Made by a program: the position numbers and the translations under genes. Shown one piece after another: positions 33,364 through 55,802 of a DNA stretch of 64,000 nucleotides (positions are counted from its first letter, which is position 1; every line of letters begins with the position of its first letter). The stretch spans positions 62,001 to 126,000 of the forward strand of contig JBLDXI010000050.1 in assembly GCA_047495785.1 (NCBI GenBank), written 5' to 3'. The notes under the pieces are model-generated. The model saw nothing but the letters and a program-made list of their open reading frames with translations, was not told where the DNA came from and ran no database searches. The stretch is from Lepidodermella squamata. Taxonomy: Eukaryota; Animalia; Gastrotricha.

Positions 33364-34401
33364 TCAAATTTTGCGAAAAACAGCGCAAATCGAACCGAAG
33401 TTATGGCCGAATTTACTCGGCTCCGCTACGACAAAACGTCGAAATTCGTCCCAGAAAAGCGACGTCACAAACTGCCGACCAGCCTCACTGCGGTACACCG
33501 AAAGGGCGTCACGAAAGTACCGCTCAAACAAACCAGCCATTGCGGTGATGTACTCATCAGCAAATTTGTTAACGTCCCCATGCTTCGCGAAATTTTGGTA
33601 AAAATCGCTGGTCGACAGCGGCAATTGCTCTGCCTTGATTAGCTCAAGCGAGTTGATAGTCGTTATGTCTTCGAATTGACGCCAGGCTATCGGGATGTTG
33701 AAGTTCAACAGCTCATTCTCTGTTATGACTTTCCGCTCAACGAGAAGCCAAGCGCACCAATACATGGCTTCGAAAACATCGGCGGCTGATTTAGTAGCAG
33801 TCCAAGTAGTTAAGACTAGAGTCCCTCCTCGCGCCAACTCATCGCTTCTGGCTCGTAGGAAACTGGTCCAATCCTCAGAGGCTTGGTGATTGAATGCGGC
33901 CAGCTCTTCGTCCGAAGCGAACAAAGACGTGCAGTGGCGGTTGATTTTAGCTGGCAGCTTTGATAGCCAACTCAAGCCTCCATTGCTCAAACCAAGATGA
34001 AGGCAGTTATCGGGTATGATTTGAGTTAAAGGGCTCAGACCAGACGCTAGGTAATTCGCGTTTTTGATTGCTTTCAAAACAGATTTCGTGCTCGATTGAT
34101 GGTAATCGAAAATTCTGCTCCAGTTCAAGTCAGCTCGGCCTTGTTCCGCATAAATGATTGAATGTATAGACTCATCGCCGTATTTTTCTCGCAAGGCATT
34201 GATAGCAGTAATAACTGATGAAGAGCTAGATTCGGGGGAAGTCACGCCGAAATTTGCGATGAAAAATGGCGAATTGTGAGAAATCTGGGCCGAGTGGTGC
34301 TCCACGGCTAGTAGAACGTGATTATTCAACATTTCGTTGTGCGGCTGGTCCTCGCACTCGTCCATTTCGTTTTTTGAGTTGAAACTTCCGGTAGAAAGCA
34401 T
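33364..34401 (-). CDS. SABATH/Methyltransf_7-like methyltransferase homolog with degenerate SAM-binding motifs (345 aa, intronless)
   Basis: Retains QASEDWTSFLRARSDELARGGTLVL and LSWLSKLP. Motif I reads IANFGVTSPES instead of IADFGSSTGAN. Confidence 0.8.
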   Translation of the reverse strand: MLSTGSFNSKNEMDECEDQPHNEMLNNHVLLAVEHHSAQISHNSPFFIANFGVTSPESSSSSVITAINALREKYGDESIHSIIYAEQGRADLNWSRIFDYHQSSTKSVLKAIKNANYLASGLSPLTQIIPDNCLHLGLSNGGLSWLSKLPAKINRHCTSLFASDEELAAFNHQASEDWTSFLRARSDELARGGTLVLTTWTATKSAADVFEAMYWCAWLLVERKVITENELLNFNIPIAWRQFEDITTINSLELIKAEQLPLSTSDFYQNFAKHGDVNKFADEYITAMAGLFERYFRDALSVYRSEAGRQFVTSLFWDEFRRFVVAEPSKFGHNFGSICAVFRKI

Positions 34402-34589
34402 TTTTCACTAACTGGTTTCACGCAGTGTTAGGAAGTATTTTTTGTTTTCCGTCTGTGGGCTAGCGGTCAGTGTCAGCTCAATGAATAAATTACTCGATAG
34501 CATTTCACAAAATTGGGATTCCTGAATACTCATTTCACGATACCTCAGCGTATGAAGAAGGATTCTCGAGCTGGGGGCAGGTGCTGGGG

Positions 34590-34719
34590 TGTCGCGACGC
34601 CCCAGCTCCGGGGCTCTAGCCAGAGGAAGGCTGAAAAACCACAGGGGGGACCCTTTGGTTTCTTTGCTGGGTCCTGGAAAACAAGTTGAAAACACTTCCG
34701 TATCCTACTTCGCACAGTG
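34590..34719 (-). repeat. Dispersed repeat family A copy
   Basis: Matches 10154-10298. Confidence 0.75.
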
Positions 34720-35204
34720 ATTCCAACCCTAATTTGAGTTCTAAAGACCTCAACTTTTCGGTTTCTCTGCTTGGACGTCTCGAATCTTGCAGGCAGAAAA
34801 TGATGATCTTAAGGGAGGAATGCAGTGAGAAACCCCGGATTCTACATTCATCAATTACTTCATTGCAACAGAGTGAAGCGAAATTTGAGCCTTCACTGGA
34901 GCATGGAATTTAGGCAGCTCGGTGCTTTTCTCGCTATGTGTGGCGGAAAAACTGAATTAAAACAATACCATAATTGAAAAAACACCGCAAAACTCGCAAT
35001 TGTGTGTAACAAAATGCTAAGAGTATGCATGTAACATTGTCACACGCTGTGAGATGTGCATTTCAAACAATAGAAATCTAGCTGTTTTTCGCACCAGATA
35101 TACTGCGCAATTATGTATGCGCACTTTTGCAACTCAGGCTCGAGATTTGACACTTGACAACACACGCGCCGGGTTGCATTTAATCATAGAGAGAGAAAGA
35201 GAAG

Positions 35205-36513
35205 ATGGAAACATCGGTAATTGTTTCCCACACTTGGCACATTATCAAGCTATGGCTCATTATCAATCTTGCAAAATATTCACAATCATCAGGTTTGATT
35301 ACTTACAGAATAATTCTTATTCAGAAAGTTAGTATAATGCATTCCTGTATTTTGTAGAAATGGTTTCTGGCGATTGGGAAGTTATGCAAAATACAAGATG
35401 CATTGGTGGCGAGAAGATAAAAAAGCCAGCTCATAGCATTTTATCATGCTCAGATTGGTGTCTGGCGAATCCTGACTGCACAGGCTTCAACGTTAACAAA
35501 TACGACGCGAGATGTGTCGCAAGATCTCATTGCGAAATGATTACGAGTGGCGACGCAACTTTCTATCGGAAACGGACAAGGAAGATAGAAGCAAAGAAAA
35601 TCATCGGTCAGTTTGAATATTTTCATCAAACCTCAAAATCAGAGTAACGGAATCACTTCATCAACTTCTAATTTTTTAATTAAATTAATTTTGCATTTTT
35701 TTATGAATTTATTTTATTTTAAATTCTTTTTTGAAGAAACCTATATCAACATCTTTAATTTCAGAATTTGTTGGGCTTTCTGACTAAATTCTCTGTTATT
35801 TATTGCCATATTATACGTTTAGACGTGACATTGTTCGACAAACCGGACTATGATGAGTACTACTTATTTCTCGATCCCGAGCAAACAACAGTAAAAACGA
35901 GGCGAACAACAACTACAACACCTGAGCCCTTTTCTACTTCCTCCCCACTTTGGGATGTTCAGGAAGGCAAGAAATGCAAAGGCGGCGCTCGGTTGGGCTT
36001 TATCAGCCTTAACAACGGCATTTGCGCAGCACTTTGCATGAAAATCGAAGACTGTACCGGGTTCAACGTTGAAAAGGACGGTTTTTGCACGGCTAGGAGT
36101 CGGTGTTCGATTGCCGACAGTGAGACAACGATTTTCTTCCGAAAACGAGAAGGCTCCCCTCCAGCTGGAGAACCTGTATTAGAAAAGGAAACGAAACCAA
36201 GTCGAGGAAAGACTCATATCCCCAAGATCCTGGAATGTAAGTTCCTTCGCTTTCAATTTTCGAGATCTTTGATTTCGCTCCATTTCCTATAGCTAAATGG
36301 GAGGTGAATAGGAAAATGCGGTGCATTGGTGGCAGTAAAGTCGGTCCTCAATCAAATGAAGCTGGGGATTGTGCTGAGGCGTGCCTTAAGGCCAAGGAAT
36401 GCGATGGCTACAATTTGAATGACAATGGGCAGTGCATTGCGAGGGCGAATTGTCAATTAGTTGATGACGACCGAGCAACTTTTATAAAGAAAAAACGTAT
36501 TGACGCTGAATAA
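35205..36513 (+). CDS. Secreted protein with three PAN/apple-like domains (~323 aa; exons 35205-35292, 35358-35606, 35823-36236, 36293-36513)
   Basis: Three repeats of W.V....CxGG......C...CL..xDCxGFNV....CxARxxC......F.K; phase-1 introns. Confidence 0.8.
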
Positions 36514-37100
36514 ATTAGAAAAACCTTGGAAGTTTGAGTGAATTTTAGATGCAATTTTTCCGGATATTTTATATCCCATTCACAATAAGAGACCTACTTG
36601 ATTACTATCTCATGGGCTTTTTTGTTTTTTTCCAAAATTTTGTTGGCCACGAAATATGACTTCCCCTCTCATTTTAGAGTTTCTCATCACTTTCATTCCC
36701 TTTGATTTCGTTACTTATGGTACACGCTGTGTTTCAGCCGAAAACCATGCGTAGTCGGCGCATTAAATTTTACCGAGGAAAATTCCAAGTCTCTCGGCCT
36801 TCACATGATACGCAGCTGATTAGCTAGATTCGACTTTTGACCACTGCAAGGTTGGACGTTTCAAGTCACATTTGGAGTTGTCGGGGGGCATATGACGTGG
36901 TTGTAATTCGCATTCATTAAGGAACGAGTACCTCGTGTTACTTGAAGTAGTAATATGTGGAATGCACGGACTTATAACTTCGAGCTTAACCCTTACTGAA
37001 CCACATTTTTCAAAAAATTAGCCATATCAAATTTCACCAGAAACAAAATAAGATAGCAATCTTACGCTTCTCTTATGAACTCTTGTCACTCGAAATAAAA

Positions 37101-39389
37101 ATGAACGCTTTCAACCTATGCTTTATTCTTGCAGGCGCTTTCCGGCTATGCTTGGCGGAGAAGGTCCTCAAAATAGTTACATTTGCTCAGATAACCAGTG
37201 CGAATGCTGCTGCTAACGTCAGAATGGGTGATTACTGTATTGCCTCGTACCAAGTCGCCGTGAATGCTGCGAATGACGACCCACAAATTCTCCCCGGCTA
37301 CAAAATCGAACTCGAGGTTTTCGACGAAGGGATCGCTGGGGCTAATACTCTAAAGTCTCTACTAAATACCAGCGAAATGCTTGGAGACCAACTTGCGCCA
37401 GTTATTGTTGGGCAAGTCATCAATTGCCAATTTTTACAGCCTGTTGTAAAGCAGTTGAGAATGATCCAGGTATCCTATGGTTGCGGTTCTATTGGGTTGA
37501 GCTACCCCAGGTCCCACTACAACGCTTTGTATTCGACAGGCGGGTCAATCGAGGGCGAATTCTTTATGTTCCTCAAGTTCATAGTTGCAATGGGAAAATG
37601 GCGCCAAATCGGGCTTGTATCAACAACTTCTTCTCTCGACGCAGCCTTAATGCGATCGATAGTCAACCACGCGTCTAACAGCAACATCTCAGTTGTCTCG
37701 ATCATAGCAGATGAAGACTTCGCCAAACTTGATTTCGCTTACGAAATGAAAGCTAGTGATGCTAGGATCTTCATTTTCGCTGGCGCTAATCCGATATCGA
37801 AGTTGGCCGCTAGGTTTGTTTGCCAGGCTTACAAAGTTGGAATAAGAGGGCCAAATTACGCGTTCCTAATGCTTTACTCAACGCTCTACTCGGTTGATTT
37901 GAAGGCTACTCTACCAGCGGAATGTGACTCTATGGATATAGTCAAGGCCCAGGCGAAGATTACTGTTTTCTTCGGCTTGAACAAAAGTTTGGGTGGACCT
38001 ATGGCTGGGAACGGTAGTCTTGGCTACGGTCCAGCAGAGTTCGAAAGCCGTTTGAAGGTCGCAATTGGTAACAAAACTGGATTAGACTACATCGCCCGGA
38101 TGTTTTGCCACGACGCAATGATGGCGGCTATTTCGATATTGAACTCGACTGAATACAAACTCAGAAGATCGAATCTAACCTTGAGTGATTGGAAAAAGGC
38201 GCCTGATTTTGTTCAACAAGTCGTGAACACCTCTGCAACGGAACTTGATATTGTAACATTGAGATCTGGGCGAATTTTCTATTCGAGCCGGTTGGAAATC
38301 GAGAATCAGCCGAGTACGGCTTCGATAACTACAAGCCTATCTGATATTCGCCATTTTTACACAATCAGCGCTTTGAACGCGAAGAATGGCTCGCTTTCCC
38401 TGTCGAATTACCTCATCGAACCTTTCCCGAATTCCAAGGCTATGTGGACAACTTTGAGTGGTAACCCGCCTAAAGATTTGTCTAGCGTGGCTAATCTAAA
38501 AATCGACATGTCGGCTGTCTCAAGGATTGTCCTGATTCTAGTTGTCTCAGCCATTTCGATATGTCAGCTAGCTGTGTCTGTTTTTTCGAGGATCAGACGC
38601 GTTGACATATTTTTCGATAGGACTAGCTCGAGCTTCGTCACTGTCGGGTGTTTTGTACTCAACGCGGCTGTAATTACCCAAGCTATTGAAGGCATTTCAT
38701 GCGTCTTAATCGTTGCTCTGCCTATATTGGGTTTCACCCTGATCAATGCTACCTTTCTGTCCAGGACTATAACATTTCATCCCCATATTCGTTATAAATC
38801 GATTGCTGAAGTAACGAGTAACACCGTGACCAGCTTCCCAAAAAGCTCGTCTCGAAGAAGAAAAGGAAGTCGCTACTCGCAAAAACCGAAAAGGCAACGA
38901 AAATTATCTCCGAGCCAGATTTCACGCTTTTCTAGTGGCTTCGTAACATCTACAATACTCCTTTGCGGATTGGCGTTGATCCTGTGGCTTGCTGTAATCC
39001 ACCCTGTCAGTTATACCATAGTTTCGAGTGAAATACAGTTCAGCAATGAGTTGGACTCGTATTATACAACTGAGGCCCTCGTTTGCACCGGGGTTGATTT
39101 CAAGTCTTGGATTGGAGGATTTCTCGGTTTCAACTTACTGATTTTGGTCATCGGCCTATTTTTCGCGTTTGAGGTTAAATCGATTGCGAAACCTGTAGAA
39201 TATCAAAAGGATATTGTCACGTATCAAATTGCAACGCTTAATAGCTTGGCGATACTGTGTGCTTCTACGCTTATTACAGTCGGCTTCCGTTCTTGGTTCG
39301 ACAGCTTATTGGTTATAACTATCAGCGAGATCGTTTACTCAACAACATCATTTTTCATTGTTTTTTCGACTGTGCTGTTCCAAAAGTGA
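37101..39389 (+). CDS. Orphan class C GPCR, GABA-B-like (Venus flytrap/ANF-receptor domain plus 7TM; 762 aa, intronless)
   Basis: Signal peptide; AVNAANDDPQILPGYKIEL, WRQIGLV, DARIFI, CQAYKVGIRGPNYAF, HDAM and PPKD motifs; seven hydrophobic segments; no Cys-rich domain. Confidence 0.85.
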   Translation: MNAFNLCFILAGAFRLCLAEKVLKIVTFAQITSANAAANVRMGDYCIASYQVAVNAANDDPQILPGYKIELEVFDEGIAGANTLKSLLNTSEMLGDQLAPVIVGQVINCQFLQPVVKQLRMIQVSYGCGSIGLSYPRSHYNALYSTGGSIEGEFFMFLKFIVAMGKWRQIGLVSTTSSLDAALMRSIVNHASNSNISVVSIIADEDFAKLDFAYEMKASDARIFIFAGANPISKLAARFVCQAYKVGIRGPNYAFLMLYSTLYSVDLKATLPAECDSMDIVKAQAKITVFFGLNKSLGGPMAGNGSLGYGPAEFESRLKVAIGNKTGLDYIARMFCHDAMMAAISILNSTEYKLRRSNLTLSDWKKAPDFVQQVVNTSATELDIVTLRSGRIFYSSRLEIENQPSTASITTSLSDIRHFYTISALNAKNGSLSLSNYLIEPFPNSKAMWTTLSGNPPKDLSSVANLKIDMSAVSRIVLILVVSAISICQLAVSVFSRIRRVDIFFDRTSSSFVTVGCFVLNAAVITQAIEGISCVLIVALPILGFTLINATFLSRTITFHPHIRYKSIAEVTSNTVTSFPKSSSRRRKGSRYSQKPKRQRKLSPSQISRFSSGFVTSTILLCGLALILWLAVIHPVSYTIVSSEIQFSNELDSYYTTEALVCTGVDFKSWIGGFLGFNLLILVIGLFFAFEVKSIAKPVEYQKDIVTYQIATLNSLAILCASTLITVGFRSWFDSLLVITISEIVYSTTSFFIVFSTVLFQK

Positions 39390-39628
39390 CACCTGTTTCA
39401 TATTCAACCAAATATGAAGTGCGAAAATATATAATATGTGGCAACAAGTGAAATGTGAGATTTTGGAAAATGTTGTAACGTATGGATCTCACTTTTGTGG
39501 GCTCATCTTAAATGCGTCTGACTAATGCACGAAGTAGGATCCTCGAACCTCTCAAACGGTGGTTACGGTACCGTGGATTCCACCCAAGTAACCCGCTAGA
39601 AACCTATATCATAATGTTTGTAAATTTA

Positions 39629-39672
39629 TTTTGCTTTTGCTTTTGCTTTTGCTTTTGCTTTTGCTTTTGCTT
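39629..39672 (+). repeat. (TTTTGC)n microsatellite
   Basis: About seven tandem TTTTGC units. Confidence 0.9.
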
Positions 39673-39756
39673 ACAATTTTCACTACTGTCTTTATTATAA
39701 TCATATCGCTCAGGATACGAAATTGAATTTGCTACTTTTTAGAGTCCCCAGTAACT

Positions 39757-40846
39757 TTAGTCATAATAATTTCGTCCATACCAGTAATTAAAAGCTAGGC
39801 CAACTGTTGAGACCTGAACAGCGAATAGGAAAAAAATGAGAGCGGCAGCCAGGGTGTCAGCTTCCCCACTCAGTCTTTGATTGAAGGAACCGCACAGTCC
39901 AACAGCGGTAATCGATTCATTTCCTACACTGCTGTGATTATTCACTAACAGGAACTGCTCATAGCCAAGCGATGTTAAAGGCCCAATAACAAATACCAAT
40001 GAGTAAAGTGCGCAGACGGCAAAGCAGCCGAGAGTCATGAAGATCAGCTGAAGTTTTTCGAAATATAATTATTAAGTGTTATCAGCAGTGAGTGATCTGG
40101 AGCTTTATTTTCCAAAATTACTTGAGTGGTAAATAAGTTTCCCGTTTGGGTAAATCTTATGGCGGTACCCAATTTCATTTTATTCAGTACTTATCTAACC
40201 ATTTCATTAGGTTATTTAACTGGTTAAGGTTTGGTTAGGGTTAGGTTTATGCTTAGAGGCTGGGACTTGAAACTAAGGATTTGGAACTGATGGGATAATT
40301 TGGTACAGATTTCAATGATGTTTGGTAGTGGATTAAATAATTCGGTGATTAATTCACTATTCCTATCCCTCAAGGTTTTGAAGAGTGAGCTATTTATCTC
40401 AGCGGTCATCTTTAGGTTTCCGAGGAGAATCGACCACGCCGAATCGAATGACGGCGTCAATTTCAGAAAATTTGCAGTCCCAAGGAGCTCTGTCGATATA
40501 TGCGAATGAACTAAAATCCAACGGCCTACCTTGCGAGTATTCGATCGGTAGAGGGTCTTCGAGGTAACGCACATCCTACGCTCGTAACTGATTATCAGGT
40601 TGGCAAAGCAACCAAACGGACCGGTGGAATTTCCGATCCACCAATTCACGGTGCAAGCAACAGGTCCGAGTTCCCAATAGCCCGTGCGGAGTGTAACCAG
40701 CATGCCCCCCGACCAGCTGACAGTCCATAAGACATTTCGCGCGGCTAGAACAGCATTTAGGGCAAGAAAGTTTCGCTTCACATTCTCATCACCCAGCCGC
40801 CTCCTGGCATTACAATAGCAGTTGCTTTCGAACTGTTATTAGCCAT
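39757..40846 (-). pseudogene. Truncated duplicate of the class A GPCR at 42262-43906
   Basis: MANNSSKATAIVMPGGGWVM is joined directly to the RNVKR region (~170 nt including TM1 deleted, frameshift to TGA). The exon 2 homolog is present; no exon 3 homolog was found. Confidence 0.8.
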
Positions 40847-42261
40847 TTACTTAACGAGAGGTTGTCTGATTTGTTAACAACAGAGGTCAGAGAGCTCATA
40901 GAGGAAAACGAGGAAAAAATGCAGCCGGAGGATTGCGGGCGTCAATCAATCAATCAAAGACGGAAATCGCAGGAGGTTCTTTAATGTTCAAATTTCAACT
41001 ATTGCTCGTTTTCACTGTTCATTATATACTTCCGCATTATATACGCGCAAAGCGCAATGGCGGGAATGGAATTTTAGAATTTGCTAAGGAAGACAGGCGC
41101 CTCAACTATGCCGAATATGTTCTGGTTACCTACATTTGCCAATCATACCAAGTAACGCGAGTTGTTCAGAGTATTATTTCAGAGAGCCAGTACCCTAGTG
41201 AGGGTATGGCTCAGGAATTAACCAGATTTTTGTCAGATGGGTTGAAAGATTGAGGGGTTTGAGAGGTAAAAATAAACTTAGCGAATGGTCACTTTCTCGC
41301 CCCTATCTTACAATTTTATACCATTTTAATGAAGAAAACTGCGCGATATGTTTATTTTATCGAGTTTTGTTGCTTTGTGCTGTGCGCGCGCTTTAATTTG
41401 GCTTACACTTCACTTTCAACTGTTGGTAATCGCTCCATTTACCTCAACGTTGCAGGGTATTCGGTTTAAACTCCAACCAGGATAAACCAGTTCATACCGG
41501 TTGTTTTAGATCCTGATATACCGCGGTTTTTTCAAATAGCGGTTTTTGGGGTGTTTTCATGCAAAAAACATCAAATGTTCATAGTTGACAGCCAGCCAGA
41601 AGTCGTCGAAGAGTCATTATGTCCCCGAGATCAATACCACACAGCTGAAATACTTCAGAAAGACTACATTGTATCACATAAAATCGATTTGGCAAACTTT
41701 TGCAAAATCGATCACTCAGTTACCAATAATCGATAATCGATATTCGATACGTGATGCGGGTGATTCGATGTCACCAACGTGTTCAGCGGCAAATACTACA
41801 TTAGATCCCAAATTTTCATGGCGAGTAATGAAACTATCGTGAAATCAGTTTTACTTCCGCTGGGGTATAATTGGGCGGTGTTAGACCTTTCAAATTGGAA
41901 ATTTTCATATAAAATCGGCAAAACCGCTGCTTTTGTCGTTGAAACCCCCCATAGAGACCCCGGCCGGGTAACTATTCACGGCGGATCAGAATCCGTTTTC
42001 AGAATTTTACTATCTATCGTACTTCCGGAGATGACTATACTCCCGGGACCATTTTTCAGCGATCGGCCGAAGGAAGCGAAGGTCATTGCTAACCACCGTG
42101 AAATCAGCTCCAGTGTAACATTGACTATTTATTTTTTTGAGTCAATATTGAGTCCACAATGTTAGCCTCAACATTGTTTATGCGAGGTAACAATCTGCTT
42201 AACGAGAAACCAACGACTTGACTGCTGATGATGCAGACATTCCCAGAGCAGCAGTGTTTTT

Positions 42262-43906
42262 TTAAAATTCCACAGCGACAACCTTAACCTTGGTTTTACG
42301 AGAAAGCAATTTGCCAAGCGAAAAGCCAGTTGGTTTCAAGGACTTGACGATAGACGATACAAATATTTCAAGGGTAACTAACATGACCCCATATTTCGTG
42401 AGACTAGCGCTAATGTACTGAGATCCCATTCCTGCGTAACTCAGCTGCAAGAAGACGCCGGCTGCCAAGGGCACGTGAAACGCAGTGTACACCACAACGC
42501 CGACAATCGACTGTTTGGCGATGAAAACCTCGCGTTTTCGCCAGTCCTCCAGCCGGCTGCCACTTCTTGGTAATTTCCAAGCTAACCGAGCCGATCTAAC
42601 CAGCGAGAACATTTTCCTGTAGAAATGAAAATCACATGAAACAAGCTTCGGTACCTAATGTCTCCGTTTCCTACCAGTAATTGAATGCTAGGCCAACTGT
42701 AGAGGCTAGAAATGCGAATAGAAAGTAAACCAGAACGATAGCGAGGGTGTCAGCTTCGTCTAACAGTTTTTGAGTGAACGCACCGCAAAGTCCAACGGGA
42801 TCAGTTGATTCGTTCGCAAGAACATTACTGTTATTCACGAAGGAAAGTTTCTGATAGCCAAACGATTTTAGGGGCGCAATCACAAATGCCAATGAGGAAA
42901 GTGCACAGTAGGCAAAGCAGCCGAGTGTCATGAAGATCAGCTGAAATTGTTCCAAATATGTATAATCAGGGTCAAGTCATTAACAAGTATATTCATGCTT
43001 CATATTCCGGGCTGACAGTGACTTGTAGACACCAAGGTCAACCCGCGTTACGGCTTAACAACTCCAAGAAAGAAAGGTACGCTGGGACTCTGCAAACTCT
43101 AATTAATAGAAACAGGATGTGAATGTCTGCTAGTGGTTGTTTTCCCGCAGGTCGACCTCTTGCAGTACTAAAAGAGTAGCTTCTGCCGTTAGGCAAATGT
43201 ATAGATGAATGATGAATGTCAAACTAATCAATTGCAGTGCGCGAATTAGGATCCTTGAACTAGGGCCTAAATTGCATGAACAAAGAGTGGCTTTGGGTTT
43301 CCCACATTTGCCCTGCAAATCGGGGAGACGATTCCCCATTCCCCACGGTACTTCGCGCAATGATTCAAAGTCCAAACCTAATATCGATGCGAATGATCTA
43401 AAATAATTGCGGCCTACCGTGTGAGTACCAGATCGGTAGAGCGTCATCGAGCTGACGCACATCCTACGCTCGTAGCTGATGATAAGATTGGCAATGCAGC
43501 CGTACGGGCCGATAACACTGACGATCCACCAGTTCACGGCGCAGGCGACTGGCCCAAGTTCCCAATAGCCTGTGCTAAGTGTAAGCAACATGCTGACTGA
43601 CGAGTTGAGTGACCAGATGATGTTTCGCGTGGCTAGAACTACATTGAGGGCAATGAAGCTTCGCTTGACATTCCTCTGGTAGTACACAGCTATGTTCGTG
43701 ATGCTGGCGACGATTGCCAGGATGGATGCGAAGACATTGGCCAGAGTGTATGGTAACCGATCTGCGACTGATGTCGTGCTCAAATCGTGGAGCCAGCCGA
43801 TGAAATACGGCCTGGGCGCATCGAAACCGCTGCCGTTGATGTACGCCATCACCCAGCCGCCACCTGGCATTACAATAGCAGTTGCTCTCGAACTGTTGTT
43901 AGTCAT
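42262..43906 (-). CDS. Divergent orphan class A (rhodopsin-like) GPCR (~369 aa; exons 43906-43418, 42940-42675, 42616-42262)
   Basis: N-glycosylated N-terminus, TM1 SITN, ECL1 WELGPVAC, TM3 LIISYERR (DRY equivalent), ECL2 Cys, TM6 AFHVP; GT-AG introns keep the frame. Confidence 0.8.
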
Positions 43907-44327
43907 TTTCCCAACGAAATTTCTAGTTGCTACAGGTAAAGCTATTAGGGGATAATCAAGGAAAATATGCAGCTCGCGTTCGTCAATCAATGAGTACGAG
44001 GAAATCGCAGGAGGTGCTTTTAAGCTCGGCTTTCACTTATTGCATTGTTGCTCCGGAAACTGTACGCAGATGATAGATGACTAATATCTTAAGAACCATC
44101 CAGCCAACTAAGTCTGCCAGGTAAGTCGTTTAGACATAGTTTATAACAAACCCCGGGGACATTATTCAAGGTGATACAAAGTAATAAAAACCGGACAGCA
44201 ACATCAATGCACTCTTTCGAAATGTCAAAAATCGACAAAATGCTGTTTCAGTTTTTATTCTCAAGTAAGTTCTTACAGGTAGAGAATAGTAGAAAAAATC
44301 AGGTCAATAGTTCACGGTTGACTGAAT

Positions 44328-46269
44328 TCAGCGCTTTCTGAATACGACAGCAATAGTAGCCATCGTGCCAGCGAATTTTTTCGGCTCAGCAGCTACAACC
44401 CGTCGGTGTTCGGCCAGCAATTTGCCGATAACCGCCGATTTTTCCGCCTCACTGCGCTTCTCATCCAACCCGTCACGGATGAACGGCTCGACAACCGCCG
44501 CGACAAAATCGACAAAGTCACGCGCAAAAACTTCTGAATCGCCATGTTCAAGGTACCTTTGATACACCCAATAATACTCTTCCGGCATGTTTTCCGCGAC
44601 CAAAAGCTCAAGGCCCAGCTTTTCGTATAAATCACACCGATCGGCTATGTCCTCGAGACTTCGCCGCATGACTGGAACCTGAAATTTCAGCGATTCTTGC
44701 CTTGAAATAACGCCTTGTTGTACCAATCTTTCAACTGCTGTTTTGACGCCGCCGGCGAAAGCTTGGTCATTCGAGCCTTTTGACATGACATTGGCGACTA
44801 GGATTCCGCCCTTGACCAGTTCCTTCGAACGAGCTGTTATGAAGGTTTCCCAGTCTTTAGCCGCTTGTTGCTTGTAAATGTGGTAGATTTTCGTGTCTTC
44901 ATTAACGTGCCATGGCGATATCATGACTTCGTCGAAGCTTTCCATTGGTAGTTTCGATAGCCAGTGCAAGGCGCTGCTTGAGAAGGCGAATTGAAGGCTG
45001 TTGTTTGGCAGAATTTGCTCGTAAAAACTGAGACCCGCAGCTACGGCAAAAACCCCTGGAAAAAATGCACAATTTTTCAAAAATTTTCATGAATTTTGTA
45101 AATAAAAAATTATCCCATTCAATTTAAAAATTGTTTGATAGATTAATCAAAAAATTGATCAAATCAAAAATAAATTATTCTGATGAATTTTCGTGAAATG
45201 AGGATACATTTCGCTTGAAATTCGAGCTAACAGAATAATTTTCCGTTTAGATTGAAATATATTAAATTTAAAATTCTTCAAGCTTCACAATTTCTCTGAA
45301 GGAATTTTGGTTGGGGTGAATTAGAATTTACAAAAATTTCAACAATTTCAAAATTGAATTTCAAAATCAAATTCGCTAATCAAATCTGATGATGGAGTTA
45401 CGTTAAATTTTATTGAATTTTAATAAATTTCGATTAAAAATTCAATTATGAAAAATCAGAAAAAGTATATTAGCTAAATTTTCTTGAATGAATCTGTTTT
45501 TTAGCAACAATCGATGAACATCGATTTTCATTTCGAAATTGCCAGAATTGCGAGGCCTGAATTTGAAATTTTGAAAATTTGAAATTGAAAGTTTTTCCAT
45601 CAAAGTTGTAAAATTTACCTGAAACTGGTTAGAAAATTAAGGCATTATTTCACTGCAACGCAAAATCGGTACCGCTTTTGATCACAATTTCGAATTTAAT
45701 TTTCACGGAATTCCTATCAATTTTCAATATTTTTAATTTTTTCAGGTAAAATTTTAACCGACCGAAATACCTTTCAGCAGAATAAAATATTCTTAAAATA
45801 ATTTCGAACAAATTATTTTGAAGTTGTTTCATAAATTGGGAATACTTTCTAAAGATCACGGCTATTTCGCTATAATTTATTTGAAATTTCATTGAAAATT
45901 TGAAAATAACACTCCAATACCTTTATGCTGTCGTACGTAGGAATTTTCCTCAGATTGCAGGTAGGTGAACAGCACTTGCCATTTATTGCGAGGCACATCT
46001 TCATGAACGGCCAATATTTGCCCAGTCTTCTCATCGCCGTACTTGGCCCTCAGACCAGCGACAATCATCGACATGGCCTCAGAACTGTTGGCACCAGTGC
46101 TTGACCCGAAATCGGCAATGATGAACGGCTGGTTGGCTGGGATATTGGCCGAGTGGTGCTTCAAGCCGGTTTCAATGTACGGCTTCGTAAGGCGCACGGT
46201 TTGCAGTTGAACTTTCGAATGCGAGTTGTAGTCTTCACGCATGGCTGAAGCTGCAAATGGCGGACTCAT
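44328..46269 (-). CDS. SABATH/Methyltransf_7-family SAM-dependent carboxyl methyltransferase (~358 aa; exons 46269-45921, 45055-44328)
   Basis: YNSHSKVQ, IADFGSSTGANS, EDVPRNKW, SFYEQILPNNSLQFAFSSSALHWLS, DWETFITARSKELVKGG. Removing the 865-nt GT-AG intron restores HKGVF as in the paralog. Confidence 0.9.
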
Positions 46270-47309
46270 TTTCGGAGATTGCAAAAATTCGTGTGTGAAA
46301 AAATGGGAGGCGAAATTTGAATTGAAATTTAGGGAAATGAGCGACCTCAATTACTGCTGTGATTACTAAAAAGTGACCTTGATTGCGCGATTGCTCGCAT
46401 AATTTGCTCTTAATTTGTCACGCAACAAACGAGGCAATAATTTGACAATATTTGACCTGATTTTTAATATTGCCTATTGCAACCATGTCACAAGTCTGAA
46501 TCACGGACAACTTGAATGGCAGACTGTCATAACACAAAATACCCAAAACAGTAAACGCGACATAACAGCTAATTTTTGCAACTGGCGACATAACAGCAGA
46601 AACACGATGCATCGTTTACAAGTTTTCGCTGTTTTATCGCATTCGCTGTTTTGCGCATATGCCGTGTTGTCGCCGTACCGAAAAAGTATTTTGAAGACTG
46701 GAGAAATAAAACTTGGGAAGAATGGAGCGAAACAATTCAGGAATCAAGATTGAAAAATGAGAAAATTACCTAAAAAATCCAGCTTAAAAAATCACATTTT
46801 AGCAGCAATATCCAGGGTGCGATCTTGGATCCCAGAGCTGCCAGGGATGGAAAAAACATGTTTGCTGTATTTGCCAAGAGGTTTATTACACTTTGATTGA
46901 TAAAATATGAATCGTAACAAGCTCTTCTGTCGATTTTTTCTCCCTTTCTCTTGCTCGGTATATTACATAGTATTTTGGTCATTAAATTGGTTGAATTTTG
47001 CTCGAAAATCCAGGCAATCAACAACTTTATGACTATCGATTGCTGAAAACCATATCGAAAAATTTTGGCAACCTTAAAATTTGAGACGAAATAATTATGC
47101 ATATAATTCAATCAGTATTAATTGCATTTGAAAGCTTACTTCTGAGTCATCAGCTGAAACGAAGGGACTATGTCACTTGTCACTTGACCAATTTGAGTTT
47201 AATAACCGAGGAAATTTGTGTTATAGATCAGTCAGTAATTTTCTACCCAACACCTGATTAATAAGTACACTATAGGTGCGGGTGATGTCGCAGGTGAAAC
47301 ATGACTAAT

Positions 47310-48298: not shown

Positions 48299-48651
48299 CC
48301 GCTAATTTCACTGGCGATGCCTGATCACATTACAAGATCGCCAACAAGTATTTCTAGTTTCATCTGTTCATGGATGGCACCGGATCCTTCGGTGATTTAC
48401 AACTAAGGTGCAGGCCATTACGATTATTGAAATACTCTAATGCAAATTTCATATCAGCTGAAGATTATGTTAGAGCTTCGAATAAAAATGTATATATTCT
48501 GAACTTCATCATAAAATCATTTTATTATAAAGCTGTTTTTATTGAACAAACCTCAAAACAAAGGGCAGAAATCTTAGGAAGATTGCGTCGACTGTTATCT
48601 CTAGTAAGTCTAGTACAGTGTGCGAAGTAGGATCTGAGGTGTATGCTGAGG

Positions 48652-49059
48652 CATGAGACGTACTATAGGACGCCGCGGCTTGCTGAGAATCAGAAAAATT
48701 GTGATATTTTTAATGAGGTCCTAATGAGGTTTTAATGAAGTCCAACTCGGCCAATGAATCATTTCATTACACTTTTTGCAATCCTCTCAAGCCTCTTTTT
48801 TTGCTTAAGATGATAAACGAGATCAACACATCTTTACACAGCGTCTCGCCGATCTTTTGCTGTAAACTAATTCTCAGCAGTTTTTAATTATTGACATTTA
48901 AAAAATAAAAATTTTATAAATTATTTAAAAATTTTAATTTCGAAATTACTGGACTAAAAATTAAATCGTGCGCACGAAATAATTATGCACAGTGGGTGGC
49001 AGCCGCGGGGTCATGTAATGGGAGCTTCGAAGCCGCGGCGTCCTATAGTACGTCTCATG
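48652..49059. mobile_element. hAT-type MITE, 408 bp, inserted in repeat family A
   Basis: Perfect 30-bp TIR CATGAGACGTACTATAGGACGCCGCGGCTT; 8-bp TSD TGCTGAGG at 48644-48651 and 49060-49067. Confidence 0.9.
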
Positions 49060-49415
49060 TGCTGAGGTGTTTTCTACTTGTTTTACAGGACCCAGCCGAA
49101 GAAACCAAAGGGTCCTCACCAAAGAAACCACCAAAGAAACCAACAAATTACCGATCACGCAGGTAAGGTTCAGGGGTGAGGATCGATGCGATTGTTGGTT
49201 TAAGTGTCCATCCTCAATTTTACTCAGAATTTGAAGCCCCACACGATGGTAAAAATTCGCTGCAGATATCTAAAAAATTGATTTTCCATCGTGAACATCG
49301 TGGACCGAATCGCTGCGCATACAAACGCTTCACAGGAAATTTGACACGGCTGTAAACTTTGTAGATTGGCTCTATGCAACTGCGGAGAATAAAACGTTCA
49401 TTTCATAAAAACATC

Positions 49416-50588
49416 ATGAAACTGCTTCTAGCTTTCCTGATGTTGGCGAAACTCTCATCGCTGGGATCTGCGACACTGATTGCTGGCAAGTTGAAGGCGA
49501 AATTCACTGAACGTTGTCAGGCATTTTTGTCGGATAACCTGCCGATGGAACAAGCACTTTATTCCAACAGCACAAGGCCGCTTGTTGTGAATGTCGCGGC
49601 GGGCCTCCACCGATTTGTTGGAATTAATGATGTGGAGCAAAAGCTTTCTTTGATGCTATATCTGTCTATATCGTGGGCACTGCCGTGCGAAACACCGAAA
49701 TGCACAGATTTACTATCCGACGCAGAATGCATGTCACTCGGTGCTACGGATCTCTACTTCACAGCCCCAGCGTTGAGCATCTGGACTCCAGACATTCAAC
49801 ATATGACTGCTTACGAGAAGCCTGCTATCGGTAACAAAATTAGCGACCTAATTTTCATACGTCCAGTTCAACCGTTTTTTCAAATGGTACACTACATTTA
49901 CGACCGATTCGACGTTTCGTGCACGGATTTCAGCTACCGCAAATTCCCATTTGATACGCAAGCCTGCACGTTGGTTTTAGAATCAACTGATGATTACAAA
50001 GGCGTTGCGCTCCGCCTTGCAATGTTTGGCGTCGACATGTCTGCTGGTAATACCTTCCTCGTTGATAGTGATATTTGGTCCCTTGTCGATCTATCCGGTT
50101 TTAACAGCACTGATTTGCAAAAAATGGAAAATTTGTTTGCATTTGATCGAATTTTTTTGACGATTCGATTCCGCCGCAAAAGTAGCTACTACGTCTGCAA
50201 CATCTTCGTACCAACTATCACGCTTTTCATCCTTCAAGTCGTTTCTCTGCTAACCGAGCCATTAAATCGAGATCGATCAGCATTTTGCGTGACTGTCGTG
50301 CTGTCTTACGTTGTGTATCTGACCTTAATCTTTGGCATGATTCCAGTAACTGCAGATCAGGTCTATCTTGTCTACATGGTCGCAATTAAGTTCATTGTTG
50401 CAGTCCTAATCACTGCTTACACTTGCTTGATTCCCAGTATTCCAGATCCACTGAAATATCGCGTTTTCAAGTTGAACAATTGTCTGGCCTTACCCTTGCA
50501 TCGCCTTCTGGACCTGGCGATCGCTGCATCGGCATTAATATTAGTAATCATTGTTGACGCTATTCTCTTCTTACTAATGTTATCTTGA
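49416..50588 (+). CDS. Cys-loop ligand-gated ion channel-like subunit, subgroup C (390 aa, intronless)
   Basis: Signal MKLLLAFLMLAKLSSLGSA, IWTPDI, Cys-loop CTDFSYRKFPFDTQAC, RRKSSYYV, M2 DRSAFCVTVVLSYVV, short M3-M4 loop. Confidence 0.9.
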   Translation: MKLLLAFLMLAKLSSLGSATLIAGKLKAKFTERCQAFLSDNLPMEQALYSNSTRPLVVNVAAGLHRFVGINDVEQKLSLMLYLSISWALPCETPKCTDLLSDAECMSLGATDLYFTAPALSIWTPDIQHMTAYEKPAIGNKISDLIFIRPVQPFFQMVHYIYDRFDVSCTDFSYRKFPFDTQACTLVLESTDDYKGVALRLAMFGVDMSAGNTFLVDSDIWSLVDLSGFNSTDLQKMENLFAFDRIFLTIRFRRKSSYYVCNIFVPTITLFILQVVSLLTEPLNRDRSAFCVTVVLSYVVYLTLIFGMIPVTADQVYLVYMVAIKFIVAVLITAYTCLIPSIPDPLKYRVFKLNNCLALPLHRLLDLAIAASALILVIIVDAILFLLMLS

Positions 50589-50770
50589 ATTCTGTCGAAT
50601 CGTTATTCGCTAACGATGGCATCCCGATAGGGATCAAACTGTCTTTTATTAATTTTGTAGCAAATAATGCTGTGGCATTCTTCTGCGTGCCTGCTGTGAA
50701 CTTGAATAAATAACAAATAAGCTTTTTTGTGTTGAACATTGAATGCTCAAAGTTGTACTGGATTACGGTA

Positions 50771-53349
50771 TCAATTCTTTCTTCCATTTCTTTCATTGAA
50801 AACCATCGCGGTTGATACTATTCGCGATCGTGTAGCCGGGGCTGCGAATTGCTGCTTTGAAGACCTGATAGTCCCAGTTTGCCTCATAGACGATGATTCA
50901 TCAACAACGCACCAAGCCGCGTCATTACTCGGCCACTTCCCAGCATAAACTGGGTACATCATAACCAAACTAGCCGTTAGGGAATAGACAAGCAACCCAA
51001 CGGCGAAAACAATCACTTTAAGCTGAACATCTGGGACGATGAAGATTATCAATAGGAAAGCGACAAAGATCGAGAAAGCATTCACTACGGCGAGACGAAC
51101 TGTTTTGAACTCGTAACAGTATCGAATTGCTACTTGAGTGTGACGAGCTTCGTACGAGAAGAAGCAGCCTGCCATGAGAAGGAACGCATGTTCAGCGACG
51201 AACCCGCCTATCCAGTCGATCTGGGTCTGCGAATAGCAGTAAGTTACTGTCACGTCGTAGTAAGTGTCGGACGAAGCGTCAAACATCACTTGAGATACAT
51301 CACTCGCTAAAGTCAAAGGCTCCCCGGCAACTAGCCAAACCAACAGAGCTATCGCATTCAGGAGGCAGAGAATGAAAATGCCTAGCTTCACCAATCGGGA
51401 CAGGTGGATAGGAGTTTCTGCAAAGGTAGTTGCACGGCGGTGTGTTGATGCCTTGCCATACATTCCACTCTCAAAAATCGACTTATTCCGGCGTAGGATG
51501 CCGTTTTGGAAGTTGAGAAACTGAACCATTGAACTCGATCGCATGAGAAGAGTCGAGTTGATGAGAATCAGACCGATTACAACAAGAACCGGCCTCCACG
51601 GGCAGAGAAAGCTCGGAAAGTTAAGCTCCCCAACTACTAGAACGATTACAAAAAGGTCCAAAACCATACAGCCAAGTAGTAACATAAGATTCGAGTCGAT
51701 TTCTAGGTATAAAGTTGAAGGCTGTTTCGACTGACTGACAACGACCGCGAAACAAATCAGCTGAAAAATCGCCACGATTCCTGCGGTAATCGCCAGACCA
51801 AGCATGGCGCTTTCAGGTATAGTTTCGTAGAAATGAGTGATTGTGGACAGATCTTTCGGTGCTTGGCCGGTTTGGGTCGCCCAAATCGGGCGTTGAACGA
51901 CAAGCATTTGATAGGCAGTGAAGTTGTACAGGTCATCGCCTGGGATTGTTTTGTAGACAAAAGTCGTGCTGCCACTCGCCGTCTTCTGTAGAACCCACAT
52001 TTCCTAGGAAAAATTGCCAAATTTAGCCTAAAAGTCCCAAATTCTATGCGATGGAAATTGATTGGAAAGAATCGATTGAATTCAAAAGTACCGAAAAATA
52101 CCCGATATAACCATATTTAGGTACTTATTTCCCAATGGATGAAAAATGTCCCTACCTCGTCATCGAATTCGTGCCTTTTCGAGTAGACAATCCTTCCCAT
52201 CCTCAGTCCATTGAAGTCCAAACCCATCGCAGCTTCATTTGCGACTCTCTCAACCAAACCAGGAGCGTCACGAAATTGCTTGAGACTGGAATTGTACCGA
52301 AGCTTCAGCAACCTCTCAGTTTTGTCCAGAGTTAGAAGTGCGGCCATTAGTGAATCATGGCAGAAGTATCTTTGACTGTAGTCCTCAACACCCCTTAGGG
52401 AATTGTTCAGCTTTTTCAGCAATTCAGCTTCGAAAAACTTGGAATCATAGCCGAAAGACGAGTTGCCAACCGGAGCGATTGAAGCTGGTAGAGTTCCTGC
52501 GAAATACGTATGTCGGTACTGGAGTAAAAGCCATTCGTAAGGACACCAAGGTGGGGTAACTTCCTTAGTGGGCGTGTAGCAGAAGACCGAAGTTATGAAC
52601 ACATAATTCGGCGCCCTAACACCAGCTTTGTAGGTATGGCACCAGAATAGGACGCAATTTGCCATGGTCGATGAGATGAAAATTACGATTCTCGCGTCGC
52701 TTTTGCTTAGTCCTATCGCCAATTCTTCATTGACATTCGGGCTTGCATCGAAATGCACGACTTTCTTGCCGTTTTCGGCAAGTTTAGATTGTAGAATTTG
52801 CATGAATGTGACCTCGCTAGCTACAGACGTAGTGCCAACTATACCGAACTCGCGCCAATTAGAAGTTCTGAAGGCGAAGGCTAACACTGGGGCTAAGTAA
52901 TTCTCAGCTGGGGCTCGAATGCGGTAGACATTGCTGTGAAACGGACTGCCAACTATAGCAGGGCCGTTGCAACTCGGGGAAATTATTGTGTAGTTGAAGT
53001 TTTTGATGACCAAACTCGCAGCGTTGCAGCCTGTTGGACCAACGACAATTGGCGAGGGGAAACTGGTTTGATCGATCGAATTCGCGTAGTTAAGAAAATT
53101 TGGGATTGTAAGGAGCCCGGATAGCCCTTCGTCCATTAGTTTGAGTTCGACTTTGTAGTCGCGAAGGATGTCACTCCGGGAATTCGCGATATCCTCAACA
53201 ATTTTGAAAGAAGCTTTACATGCAGCTCCGTTGGCTGGTTCATATCCAGTGAATCGGACGAAAGTAGGAATCGACAATTTATCGGACTTGAAGGGGTTAA
53301 CTTCGATAGCTATGGCTGCAAATAGGACAAGAGACAGACCCGCTCTCAT
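50771..53349 (-). CDS. Orphan class C GPCR, GABA-B-like (~808 aa; exons 53349-52156, 52003-50771)
   Basis: Paralog of 37101 (ANSRSDILRDYKVEL, DARIVI, CHTYKAGVRAPNYVF, FCHDSL, APKDLS); 7TM ending MMYPVY; 152-nt GT-AG phase-0 intron. Confidence 0.85.
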
Positions 53350-54734
53350 GTTGTTAATCGATCTATTTCGCGATAAATTTCGAAATATTTTTAGTACTGC
53401 GCGATAAAAACTATGAGCCTCGAAACAAGTGTCAAGTGCTTGACAAAATAAAAATAATGATTTTTCCGGACTTTACATTCGGATGGAGGTATTCAGGGCA
53501 GAGGCCTCAAATAGCGTTCGAAAGTAATTTTGTTAATTGTCTGTAGGCGTGGTCGTGGAATCGACAGTTCTCTTCTTCAGTCGATCCCCTGTCGTGACGT
53601 CAAACGCTCGGCGTAAGGGGTGTGACGCGTTTTCCCGACATTTACTCTGTTATTCTGACCATATAAAGAGCTTGGCCATTAAAAAAATTGTAAATACGAA
53701 AGTAATAAAGCAAGTAATTACGAAAATTAAAATCGATTAGGTAGGCGCCTATGTCCTCCTCTTAGAGAAGCACTCACCAAACGGACCTCTCAATAAAATT
53801 CCAACTTGAAGCAAATTACAAGCCTAAATCGCTAGCGACTAATCATTGGAAGTGTCTTCGTAAAAGCCCTGGATTTGTGATTTTAAGTAAAGCGTAAAAC
53901 CAGTGAAAAAATCCTAGCTTTTCTCGAAAGGACATTTTTCAAAGTTACAAATGCCCTACGTCAGCAAGGTCTAAATTAGGAAATGTTGGACTGGCTTGTC
54001 ATTTCTCCGAACGTGAGTTGTGAGGTTTTCCGCCATAAAAAATTGAGATTTGACGTTCAAGCACCCCCAGCAAGTACCCTCGCAATGCTCTTGGTATTAA
54101 ATATTCTCCCATATTTCACTATTTCGGCAAATAGGCTATATTTTCCTAACTACTAACAATCTCGCAATCAAAGTGTATCTGATGGTGTCTCATATACATT
54201 TGTTAATGTTAGGGCTCCACAGAAAAAATGCATGCTGCGAATTTTTTAGGGAGAGCATTTATAGTTACCTGGGGGTAGCTTGAAAGCAAAATGTGTCTCG
54301 TGGCGTTATGTCTGAGAAGCCGCACATGATCGAGTCCGATGATAGTGCTTCCGACCAACTGACGTGGATATCCGCATCAGACTATGTCCACACATTGAAA
54401 AAATGTCGCCTTTAGGCATTAGACACGTGATTATTTTGTTTTTCCAGCTATATCAATCATCTGAAAGAAATTAATCCATTACAATCGGCATGGGTGTCTC
54501 GTTTCGGACACACTTATCACAAGTCCCAATTATTTCCTTAATTTTGATTACAGACTTTCCTACACCATCGACATTCAGAAATAGTACAATTATTTAGACG
54601 GAGTAAACTGCGAAACAAAAGTTTACACTTAAGCCAGACGAGAAAATTTGAGCTGGAACCACTAACATAAACAAACAAATCTGAAATTTGCTAATTTTAT
54701 TTGTAAAATAGTGCAAAGTAAATTCAATTCAAAT

Positions 54735-55802
54735 TCAGTTCATTTTCTGAAACACAACTGCCATCGCAGACCACAGGCTTGAGAATTTATCTGGCGCCAT
54801 AGCGACGTAGCGCTTCTGTTCATCGAACAGAATCTTCGCAATTGCCTTCTTCTCCTCCTCCGATCGCTTGTTCGACAAACATTGCAAGAAAAACGGCTCC
54901 ATAGCCGCAGCCATTGAGTCGACAAACTCGTCAGCAAACCTAGCCGCATCTTTATGCTCGAGATAGCTAGCGAACAAGTGATGCTGAGCTGGTGGAAGGT
55001 GCTCAGCTTTCACAAGCTTCAGCCCCAACATTTCGTACAATCCAACCGGCCCGGTGATATCGTCCATAGTTCGCCACATCATTGGGACCTGAAAATTGAC
55101 CAGTTCTTCGGCTGTAACTACTCCACGTTGAACAAAAGCGCGTAGCATAGCTGTGAAGCCAGTTATCATCGTGGTTTGGCCGTCTTGTTTCGATAGGAAA
55201 TTCACGACCAAAACACCACCAGGGACCAATTCGCGAGATCGAGCTGTTAGAAAGTTCTGCCAATCCACCGCAGCTTGTTCCCGGAAAAGAGCGGCCACTT
55301 TTTCGGCATCGTAACCCATTGGTGAGTAGATTCCCTCCAGTTTCCCTGGGATTTTCGACATCCAATGAAGCGAACAGTTCGAAAAGGCGAATTGCAGACT
55401 GTTATCCGGCAGAACTTGCTCGAAAAAGTTCAAACCAGCCGCGAGTGAGAAAACGCCCTTATGCTGCTTCAGGTACGACCTCTCGCTGCCATGGATAAAG
55501 TTGAACATTACATCCCATTTGTTACGAGGGACGTCCTCGTGAACCACAAGAAATGAAGGAATAGCTTCTTCGCCGTATTTGTTGCGGAACAGGCTGATAA
55601 CGATAGACATAGCTTCCGAGCTGTTCGCGCCAGTGCTTGAGCCGAAATCGGCAATAACGAAAGGCGTTGCTCTAGGAAGTTCGCCCGCATGTTGTTGGAT
55701 GCCCAGCTCGATGAAGGGTGTTGTCAGTTCAAGGATCTGTAGCTGATTTCGCGAGTGGCTGTTGTAGTCTTCTCGCATAGCTAAAGAAGTAGTTGGCGAC
55801 AT
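54735..55802 (-). CDS. SABATH/Methyltransf_7-family SAM-dependent carboxyl methyltransferase (355 aa, intronless)
   Basis: IADFGSSTGANS, HEDVPRNKW, FFEQVLPDNSLQFAFSNCSLHWMSK, QAAVDWQNFLTARSRELVPGGVLV. Confidence 0.9.
   Translation of the reverse strand: MSPTTSLAMREDYNSHSRNQLQILELTTPFIELGIQQHAGELPRATPFVIADFGSSTGANSSEAMSIVISLFRNKYGEEAIPSFLVVHEDVPRNKWDVMFNFIHGSERSYLKQHKGVFSLAAGLNFFEQVLPDNSLQFAFSNCSLHWMSKIPGKLEGIYSPMGYDAEKVAALFREQAAVDWQNFLTARSRELVPGGVLVVNFLSKQDGQTTMITGFTAMLRAFVQRGVVTAEELVNFQVPMMWRTMDDITGPVGLYEMLGLKLVKAEHLPPAQHHLFASYLEHKDAARFADEFVDSMAAAMEPFFLQCLSNKRSEEEKKAIAKILFDEQKRYVAMAPDKFSSLWSAMAVVFQKMN

Follow-up and report, generated by a model that had tools for sequence, protein, structure and literature searches.

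Plants use SABATH (Methyltransf_7) enzymes to make methyl salicylate, and in the structure of one of these enzymes, SAMT (1M6E), Q25 and W151 reportedly hold the substrate carboxylate, with D57 and D98 binding S-adenosylmethionine (SAM). Among animals, the arthropod enzyme JHAMT is a SAM-dependent carboxyl O-methyltransferase that acts on a lipophilic acid. Three genes of the Methyltransf_7 family, designated here g1, g2, and g3, lie on the minus strand of a 64,000-nucleotide stretch of genomic DNA from the gastrotrich Lepidodermella squamata (contig C50, JBLDXI010000050.1, positions 62001 to 126000; "the window"), and an earlier note on this DNA had described them as plant-SABATH-like. On balance, the trio probably belongs to a non-plant branch of the family that is expanded and long resident in the gastrotrich genome, was inherited vertically, and goes back to a common origin with the bdelloid rotifer families and that of the flatworm Macrostomum, g2 and g3 being active and g1 non-catalytic.

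The Pfam gathering score for Methyltransf_7 (PF03492; 29.8 bits) was exceeded by all three genes, in the case of g2 by both exon pieces (overall range, 30.2 to 138.3 bits), and the open reading frames (ORFs) bore out the positions, strand, and family given in the earlier note. The motif order that it had reported was likewise found by direct reading of g2 and g3, in which all of the listed SABATH motifs are readable: IADFGSSTGANS, HEDVPRNKW, FFEQ/FYEQ..LP..S......LHWMS/LHWLS, and DW..F..ARS.EL..GG. A specific likeness to plants was not borne out. By sequence, the best solved match is the fatty acid O-methyltransferase (FAMT) of Mycobacterium marinum (5f2k; E values of 2.2e-33 for g3 and 2e-18 for g1), followed by plant LAMT and SAMT (1e-18 to 1e-16). 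FAMT also ranked first in Foldseek searches with the AlphaFold models of g3 (pLDDT, 84.9) and g1 (pLDDT, 91.4), with a template modeling (TM) score of 0.85 for both (g3 to 5f2o/5f2k and g1 to 5f2k). Ranks 1 to 29 were occupied by SABATH-family chains only, the plant SABATH structures at TM scores of 0.72 to 0.79, and other methyltransferase families came after. On these models, g1 and g3 are predicted to have a Rossmann-type SAM-methyltransferase core with a SABATH helical cap.

Phylogeny and origin of the family

In the IQ-TREE phylogeny (LG+C20+F+G4 by posterior mean site frequencies, 79 rows, 351 columns; support given as UFBoot/SH-aLRT), the Macrostomum sequences and all gastrotrich paralogs formed a clade with one metagenome protein, P0060 (100/98). 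The bdelloid sequences formed a clade of their own (98/84) and joined the former group with support of 100/97 (99 in FastTree). Plant SABATHs were a separate clade (100/99) and the bacterial FAMT group, with its Mycobacterium homologs, lay outside (99/99); the window genes were nested within neither. Within the gastrotrich radiation, g3, g2, and a pair of paralogs on contigs C1 and C20 made up one subclade (100/98), the g2 entry being exon 2 alone, as this gene was searched exon by exon. A FastTree phylogeny of 196 rows recovered the same clades.

The order of the clade, in which flatworm and gastrotrich sequences stand together with rotifers outside, mirrors the species tree and thus speaks for a long residence by vertical descent rather than for transfer that was recent or independent. 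A large, long-resident family common to flatworms and rotifers therefore makes a fresh gene transfer unlikely, and independent intron gains, host-like base composition, and strong purifying selection are consistent with a long residence in which descent was vertical and expansion lineage specific. Vertical inheritance of the family would most likely reach back at least to the common ancestor of gastrotrichs and flatworms and probably to an early spiralian, with multiplication within gastrotrichs thereafter. The founding gene may be of old eukaryotic stock, with losses in most animals, or it may have entered an early spiralian by ancient transfer. Of the horizontal acquisition envisaged in the earlier note, a lineage-specific event is made less likely by the nesting of the genes in a strongly supported animal clade that is ordered like the species tree, although this clade, which covers only three phyla, would also be compatible with ancient transfer into a spiralian ancestor.

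Relatives were drawn from word matching or from the best 150 profile matches. The word search returned few: a EukProt transcript (39% identity), bdelloid rotifers (29 to 37%), and metagenome proteins, with plants far behind. The profile search gave 2926 matches at an E value of <=0.001 and 373 at <=1e-30, and the named best matches were Arcella intermedia (transcriptome), Didymodactylos, Rotaria, Adineta, Macrostomum lignano, Lingula anatina, and the rhizarian Lapot gusevi; the high rank of two plant entries is due solely to their being fused multidomain gene models. When a profile of the clade was used for word matching, the named matches were bdelloids and several Macrostomum paralogs only, one of the latter on a 388-kb genome contig. 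Among GTDB genomes, those matching the motif-I pattern were mostly Mycobacteriaceae and other Actinomycetota, at 27 to 36% identity, in a scan whose query, a narrow alignment, was biased toward motif-I look-alikes. The setting of one neighboring clade is a compact ciliated-protist genome, another match is an mRNA-like contig, and the protein P0004 lies in a bacterial operon-like context. On the metagenome contig of P0060, the neighboring proteins had no Pfam match and no homolog in the gastrotrich genome. In addition, a 516-amino-acid protein of Adineta steineri (P0252) has Methyltransf_7 joined to a PfkB adenosine kinase domain (PF00294), which is either a fusion linking methyl transfer with removal of a breakdown product of S-adenosylhomocysteine or an annotation merger.

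Several observations weigh against a single, vertically inherited animal family. Its distribution in animals is patchy, with only three meiofaunal lineages in the clade as sampled by the word search and the best 150 matches, and bdelloids are notorious for gene transfer. The backbone of the IQ-TREE phylogeny is a polytomy, which would allow either a protist or a bacterium as the sister group. The metagenome protein P0060 falls inside the animal clade, and a protein labeled Arcella (P0037/P0001; UniRef A0A6B2L8N3) is nested among the gastrotrich paralogs (91/94), being <=47% identical to any of them. Intron positions are not common to the phyla.

Most of these points would also be expected if gastrotrichs, Macrostomum, and bdelloids had gained their genes horizontally and independently from related donors, e.g., freshwater protists, or if the genes had passed from animal to animal, the clade then reflecting a shared donor pool. 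The named animal matches to the clade profile are bdelloids and Macrostomum only, with Lingula elsewhere in the tree; most copies are intronless; and neighboring clades include protists, namely, Lapot gusevi and the sequences in the ciliated-protist context. We nevertheless consider this explanation unlikely, as the animal clade is strongly supported and its internal order is the one that vertical descent predicts, and identity to g3 is at most about 39% for any donor-like sequence. The position of the Arcella protein among gastrotrich paralogs fits contamination or outward transfer better than a donor role, and the sequence likely stems from a small animal that contaminated the amoeba culture or from transfer out of an animal lineage. 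The Lingula anatina homolog (XP_023930208.1, P0069, named "gibberellic acid methyltransferase 1") grouped with P0004 (100/99), and forcing it into the spiralian clade was rejected by the approximately unbiased test (P = 0.0004, for a group named after the tree had been seen); it is probably a separate acquisition.

The earlier note had also seen in two intronless genes and one gene with a single intron a structure compatible with a domesticated transfer. The structure is correct, and it is weak evidence for transfer, because the neighboring animal genes are themselves intron poor and because the positions differ between phyla: the intron of Macrostomum P0247 follows SFYKQ, that of Rotaria P0065 falls between ELKK and G, and that of g2 differs from both. 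As the positions differ, shared intron positions were uninformative as a test of common descent.

Predicted activity of g2 and g3

SAMT residues were mapped onto g3 via the HMMER alignment to 1m6e, in which S22, Q25, D57, D98, F130, and W151 of SAMT correspond to S17, Q20, D52, D90, F126, and W147 of g3, respectively. The SAM-binding set of g3 is thus present (D52, G54, G58, and D90), and in g2 the SAM-binding Asp and Gly motifs can be read directly in IADFGSSTGANS and HEDVP. Of the Gln/Trp pair for carboxylate binding, g3 has Q20 and W147 and g2 has the same motifs; g1 keeps the Trp alone. An alignment of 34 sequences gave S-Q-D-G-G-D-S-F-H-W at 10 functional positions for nearly all members, whether from gastrotrich, flatworm, rotifer, protist, or bacterium. 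As judged from sequence, g2 and g3 keep all of the predicted SAM- and carboxylate-binding residues, and a signal peptide is not evident at the N terminus of either.

As these residues are conserved and the nearest solved enzyme is FAMT, g2 and g3 are predicted to be cytosolic SAM-dependent carboxyl O-methyltransferases of lipophilic acids. SAM would lie on the Rossmann core, where the motif-I Asp and the second Asp would keep it in place; the conserved Gln/Trp pair would grip the carboxylate of the substrate; and transfer of the methyl group to that carboxylate would yield a methyl ester. By analogy with the nearest solved enzyme, a fatty acid O-methyltransferase, the best guess for the substrate is a lipophilic aliphatic acid, fatty or isoprenoid.

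Alternatively, g2 and g3 could be active on a group other than a carboxyl, either as N-methyltransferases like those of the caffeine-synthase branch or on another nucleophile. N-methylation is also supported by the SABATH fold in plants, CkTcS and xanthosine methyltransferase were among the fold matches, and carboxyl methylation by members of the animal clade is itself a prediction. However, the pair equivalent to Q25 and W151 of SAMT is kept not only in g2 and g3 but in nearly the whole clade, and the solved enzyme closest to both is a carboxyl O-methyltransferase, which makes methylation of other groups improbable.

Second copy, selection, and expression

The entire window is collinear with positions 1431522 to 1492329 of contig C30, at 82 to 97% nucleotide identity, and the C30 copy has counterparts of g1, g2, and g3 in the same order. 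Synonymous divergence (dS) between the two copies is 0.18 to 0.28 for the three genes. The C30 copy is either a very divergent haplotype of a parthenogenetic animal or a large segmental duplication.

All three genes are under strong purifying selection relative to their C30 counterparts. The ratio of nonsynonymous to synonymous divergence (dN/dS) is 0.064 for g3 (51.5 synonymous and 13.5 nonsynonymous differences; P under neutrality, 1e-21), 0.049 for exon 2 of g2 (39 and 8; P, 1e-18), and 0.077 for g1 (36 and 11; P, 2.6e-15).

Two sequencing runs were compared as contigs. Run X1 (2024, DNA-like) covered the full 2.2 kb compared at g2. Run X2 (2015), by an automatic guess an RNA data set and probably so, covered both exons and had zero depth over the 865-nucleotide intron. 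At the donor site, one X2 contig departs from exon 1 and continues with 25 letters that are the exact start of exon 2 of the C30 copy; therefore, if X2 is RNA, g2 has a C30 counterpart that is transcribed and whose homologous intron is spliced out. In addition, three X2 contigs at least 99% identical to g2 of the window suggest that this copy is also expressed.

g1, a conserved probable pseudoenzyme

The 10 functional positions of g1 read N-D-N-G-P-G-S-P-S-W, so that 7 of the 10 family residues are lost; the C30 copy has H at the third. Both SAM-binding Asp residues, one loop Gly, and the carboxylate-binding Gln are missing from both copies, whereas the fold and the C-terminal half are retained. 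The description of the trio in the earlier note as two intact genes and one degenerate gene therefore holds for the catalytic motifs of g1 but not for its reading frame, which is intact over 345 codons.

g1 has lost these positions yet is conserved and is therefore probably a pseudoenzyme, most likely a non-catalytic paralog maintained by selection, which might perhaps serve as a binding protein or a dimer partner. A decaying pseudogene could also have lost 7 functional positions and acquired a long branch (1.18 in the IQ-TREE phylogeny). This explanation is very unlikely, as both copies, on C50 and on C30, have an intact ORF and the fold model is confident in itself and in its match to FAMT, and it was rejected by the dN/dS relative to the C30 copy.

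A second pair of paralogs, C30:53633-54310 and C60:150653-151318 (L022 and L023), has the glycine loop deleted and lacks the second-Asp motif, with an intact ORF and a dN/dS of 0.20. It is a candidate for another dead enzyme in the family.

Genomic setting and family size

The genes and their neighbors are listed in Table 1. The neighboring ORFs are of animal type, as the earlier note had proposed for the genome, and comprise two class C G-protein-coupled receptors (GPCRs; ANF_receptor and 7tm_3), a Cys-loop channel, a piece of a rhodopsin-type GPCR, and Sushi and EB modules. One of the class C GPCRs is a single ORF of 768 codons, which shows that the genome is intron poor. G+C content is even over the region, and the methyltransferase genes match their surroundings. 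Two tandem copies of a multi-exon membrane-protein gene between g1 and g2 probably represent a lineage-specific receptor family.

TABLE 1 Positions of the methyltransferase genes and of interspersed genes in the window
Feature	Position	Strand	Description	PF03492 score (bits)
g1	33364-34401	minus	Single intact ORF of 345 codons	71.6
Class C GPCR gene	37083-39389	plus	ANF_receptor and seven-transmembrane part	
Tandem membrane-protein genes	39757-43990	minus	Two copies of a multi-exon gene; no Pfam match	
Tandem ORF pair, first	39757-40038 / 42671-42955	minus		
Tandem ORF pair, second	40224-40781 / 43130-43990	minus		
g2, whole gene	44328-46269	minus	One intron; predicted spliced product of 358 amino acids	
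g2 exon 1	45921-46269	minus	ATG at 46269; 116 codons plus 1 base, the last base (45921) being the first of a Gly codon; carries IADFGSSTGANS and HEDVPRNKW	
g2 exon 1, ORF piece	45889-46350	minus		30.2
g2 intron	45920-45056	minus	865 nucleotides, GT..AG, phase 1, AT-rich; read from DNA	
g2 exon 2	45055-44328	minus	Stop codon at 44328-44330	
g2 exon 2, ORF piece	44328-45080	minus		102.7
Class C GPCR gene	50771-53349	minus	ANF_receptor and seven-transmembrane part	
g3	54735-55802	minus	Intact single-exon ORF of 355 amino acids	138.3

The assembly searched comprised 121.2 Mb in 151 contigs; a published L. squamata assembly (2024) has 122 Mb in 157 contigs (PMC11660948). A six-frame search of the former gave 30 PF03492 matches, equivalent to about 20 to 25 loci on 13 contigs, which bears out the suggestion of a lineage-specific expansion. 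The term "domesticated" is equally apt, in view of the animal neighbors, the spliceosomal intron of g2, the collinear second copy, purifying selection, and the exon-only coverage in X2. Further family members are paired across contigs (C1/C20, C30/C60, and C2/C135). At C17:509595-525259 there are three tandem two-exon members with a short intron at a position other than that in g2, and this intron was therefore gained independently within the family.

Recent transfer from bacteria or bacterial contamination of the assembly, to which the mycobacterial identity of the best solved relative and the many Actinomycetota homologs with the same motif-I pattern might point, is effectively refuted, since the bacterial matches are only 27 to 36% identical and fall outside the animal clade (99/99) and the genes alternate with animal receptor genes, match the G+C content around them, include a spliceosomal intron in g2, and exist in two collinear diverged copies.

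Significance

These results correct the reading of a plant gene in an animal to that of a real and little-noticed spiralian branch of SABATH-type methyltransferases, which gastrotrichs, a basal flatworm, and bdelloid rotifers carry as expanded multigene families. The family, its fold, and its chemistry are already known, and rotifer, flatworm, and brachiopod homologs already have database entries with automatic names. New are the family in gastrotrichs, the support for a clade that spiralians share, and a dead paralog that is conserved; a limited search of the literature on SABATH or PF03492 in animals or rotifers found no paper describing an animal branch. The genes offer enzymes that are candidates for the methyl-ester metabolites of meiofauna, in g1 a clean case of a dead paralog under conservation, and a test case for telling ancient transfer from patchy retention.

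A wider scenario is conceivable, if doubtful. A SABATH-type carboxyl methyltransferase that Spiralia gained a single time, or kept, at their base may survive only in a few microscopic freshwater lineages and may there have radiated into dozens of enzymes making lipophilic methyl esters of the fatty-acid or farnesoate type as hormones, pheromones, or defense compounds, with dead copies such as g1 acting as regulators or ligand binders. If true, this would be an animal counterpart of the methyl-ester signaling toolkit of plants.

Comparison with known systems

The bdelloid (Rotaria, Adineta, and Didymodactylos) and Macrostomum lignano families are among the closest known systems to the gastrotrich genes. 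They belong to the same clade (100/97), have the same functional residues, are present in multiple copies per genome, and are mostly single exon or one intron; they differ in intron positions and are 25 to 37% identical to the window genes. Their database names are automatic, e.g., "salicylate carboxymethyltransferase" and "SAM dependent carboxyl methyltransferase."

FAMT (5f2k, 5f2n, and 5f2o) is of similar length and shares the motif-I, second-Asp, and Q/H-W motifs. However, its identity to the gastrotrich genes is about 27 to 33%, its clade lies outside that of the animals, and the gastrotrich genes reside in a eukaryotic genome, one of them with an intron.

The plant SABATH enzymes (SAMT [1m6e], LAMT [6c8r], IAMT [3b5i], and the caffeine-type N-methyltransferases) share PF03492, the fold, and the SAM- and carboxylate-binding residues with the gastrotrich genes. 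They nevertheless form their own clade, their identity in structural alignments is 16 to 21%, and the gastrotrich genes are closer to bacterial and protist members than to them. Arthropod JHAMT, finally, is a functional analogue of the activity proposed for g2 and g3 but belongs to another methyltransferase family, lacks the SABATH cap domain, and is a remote fold match (TM score of about 0.46, ranks 39 to 50).

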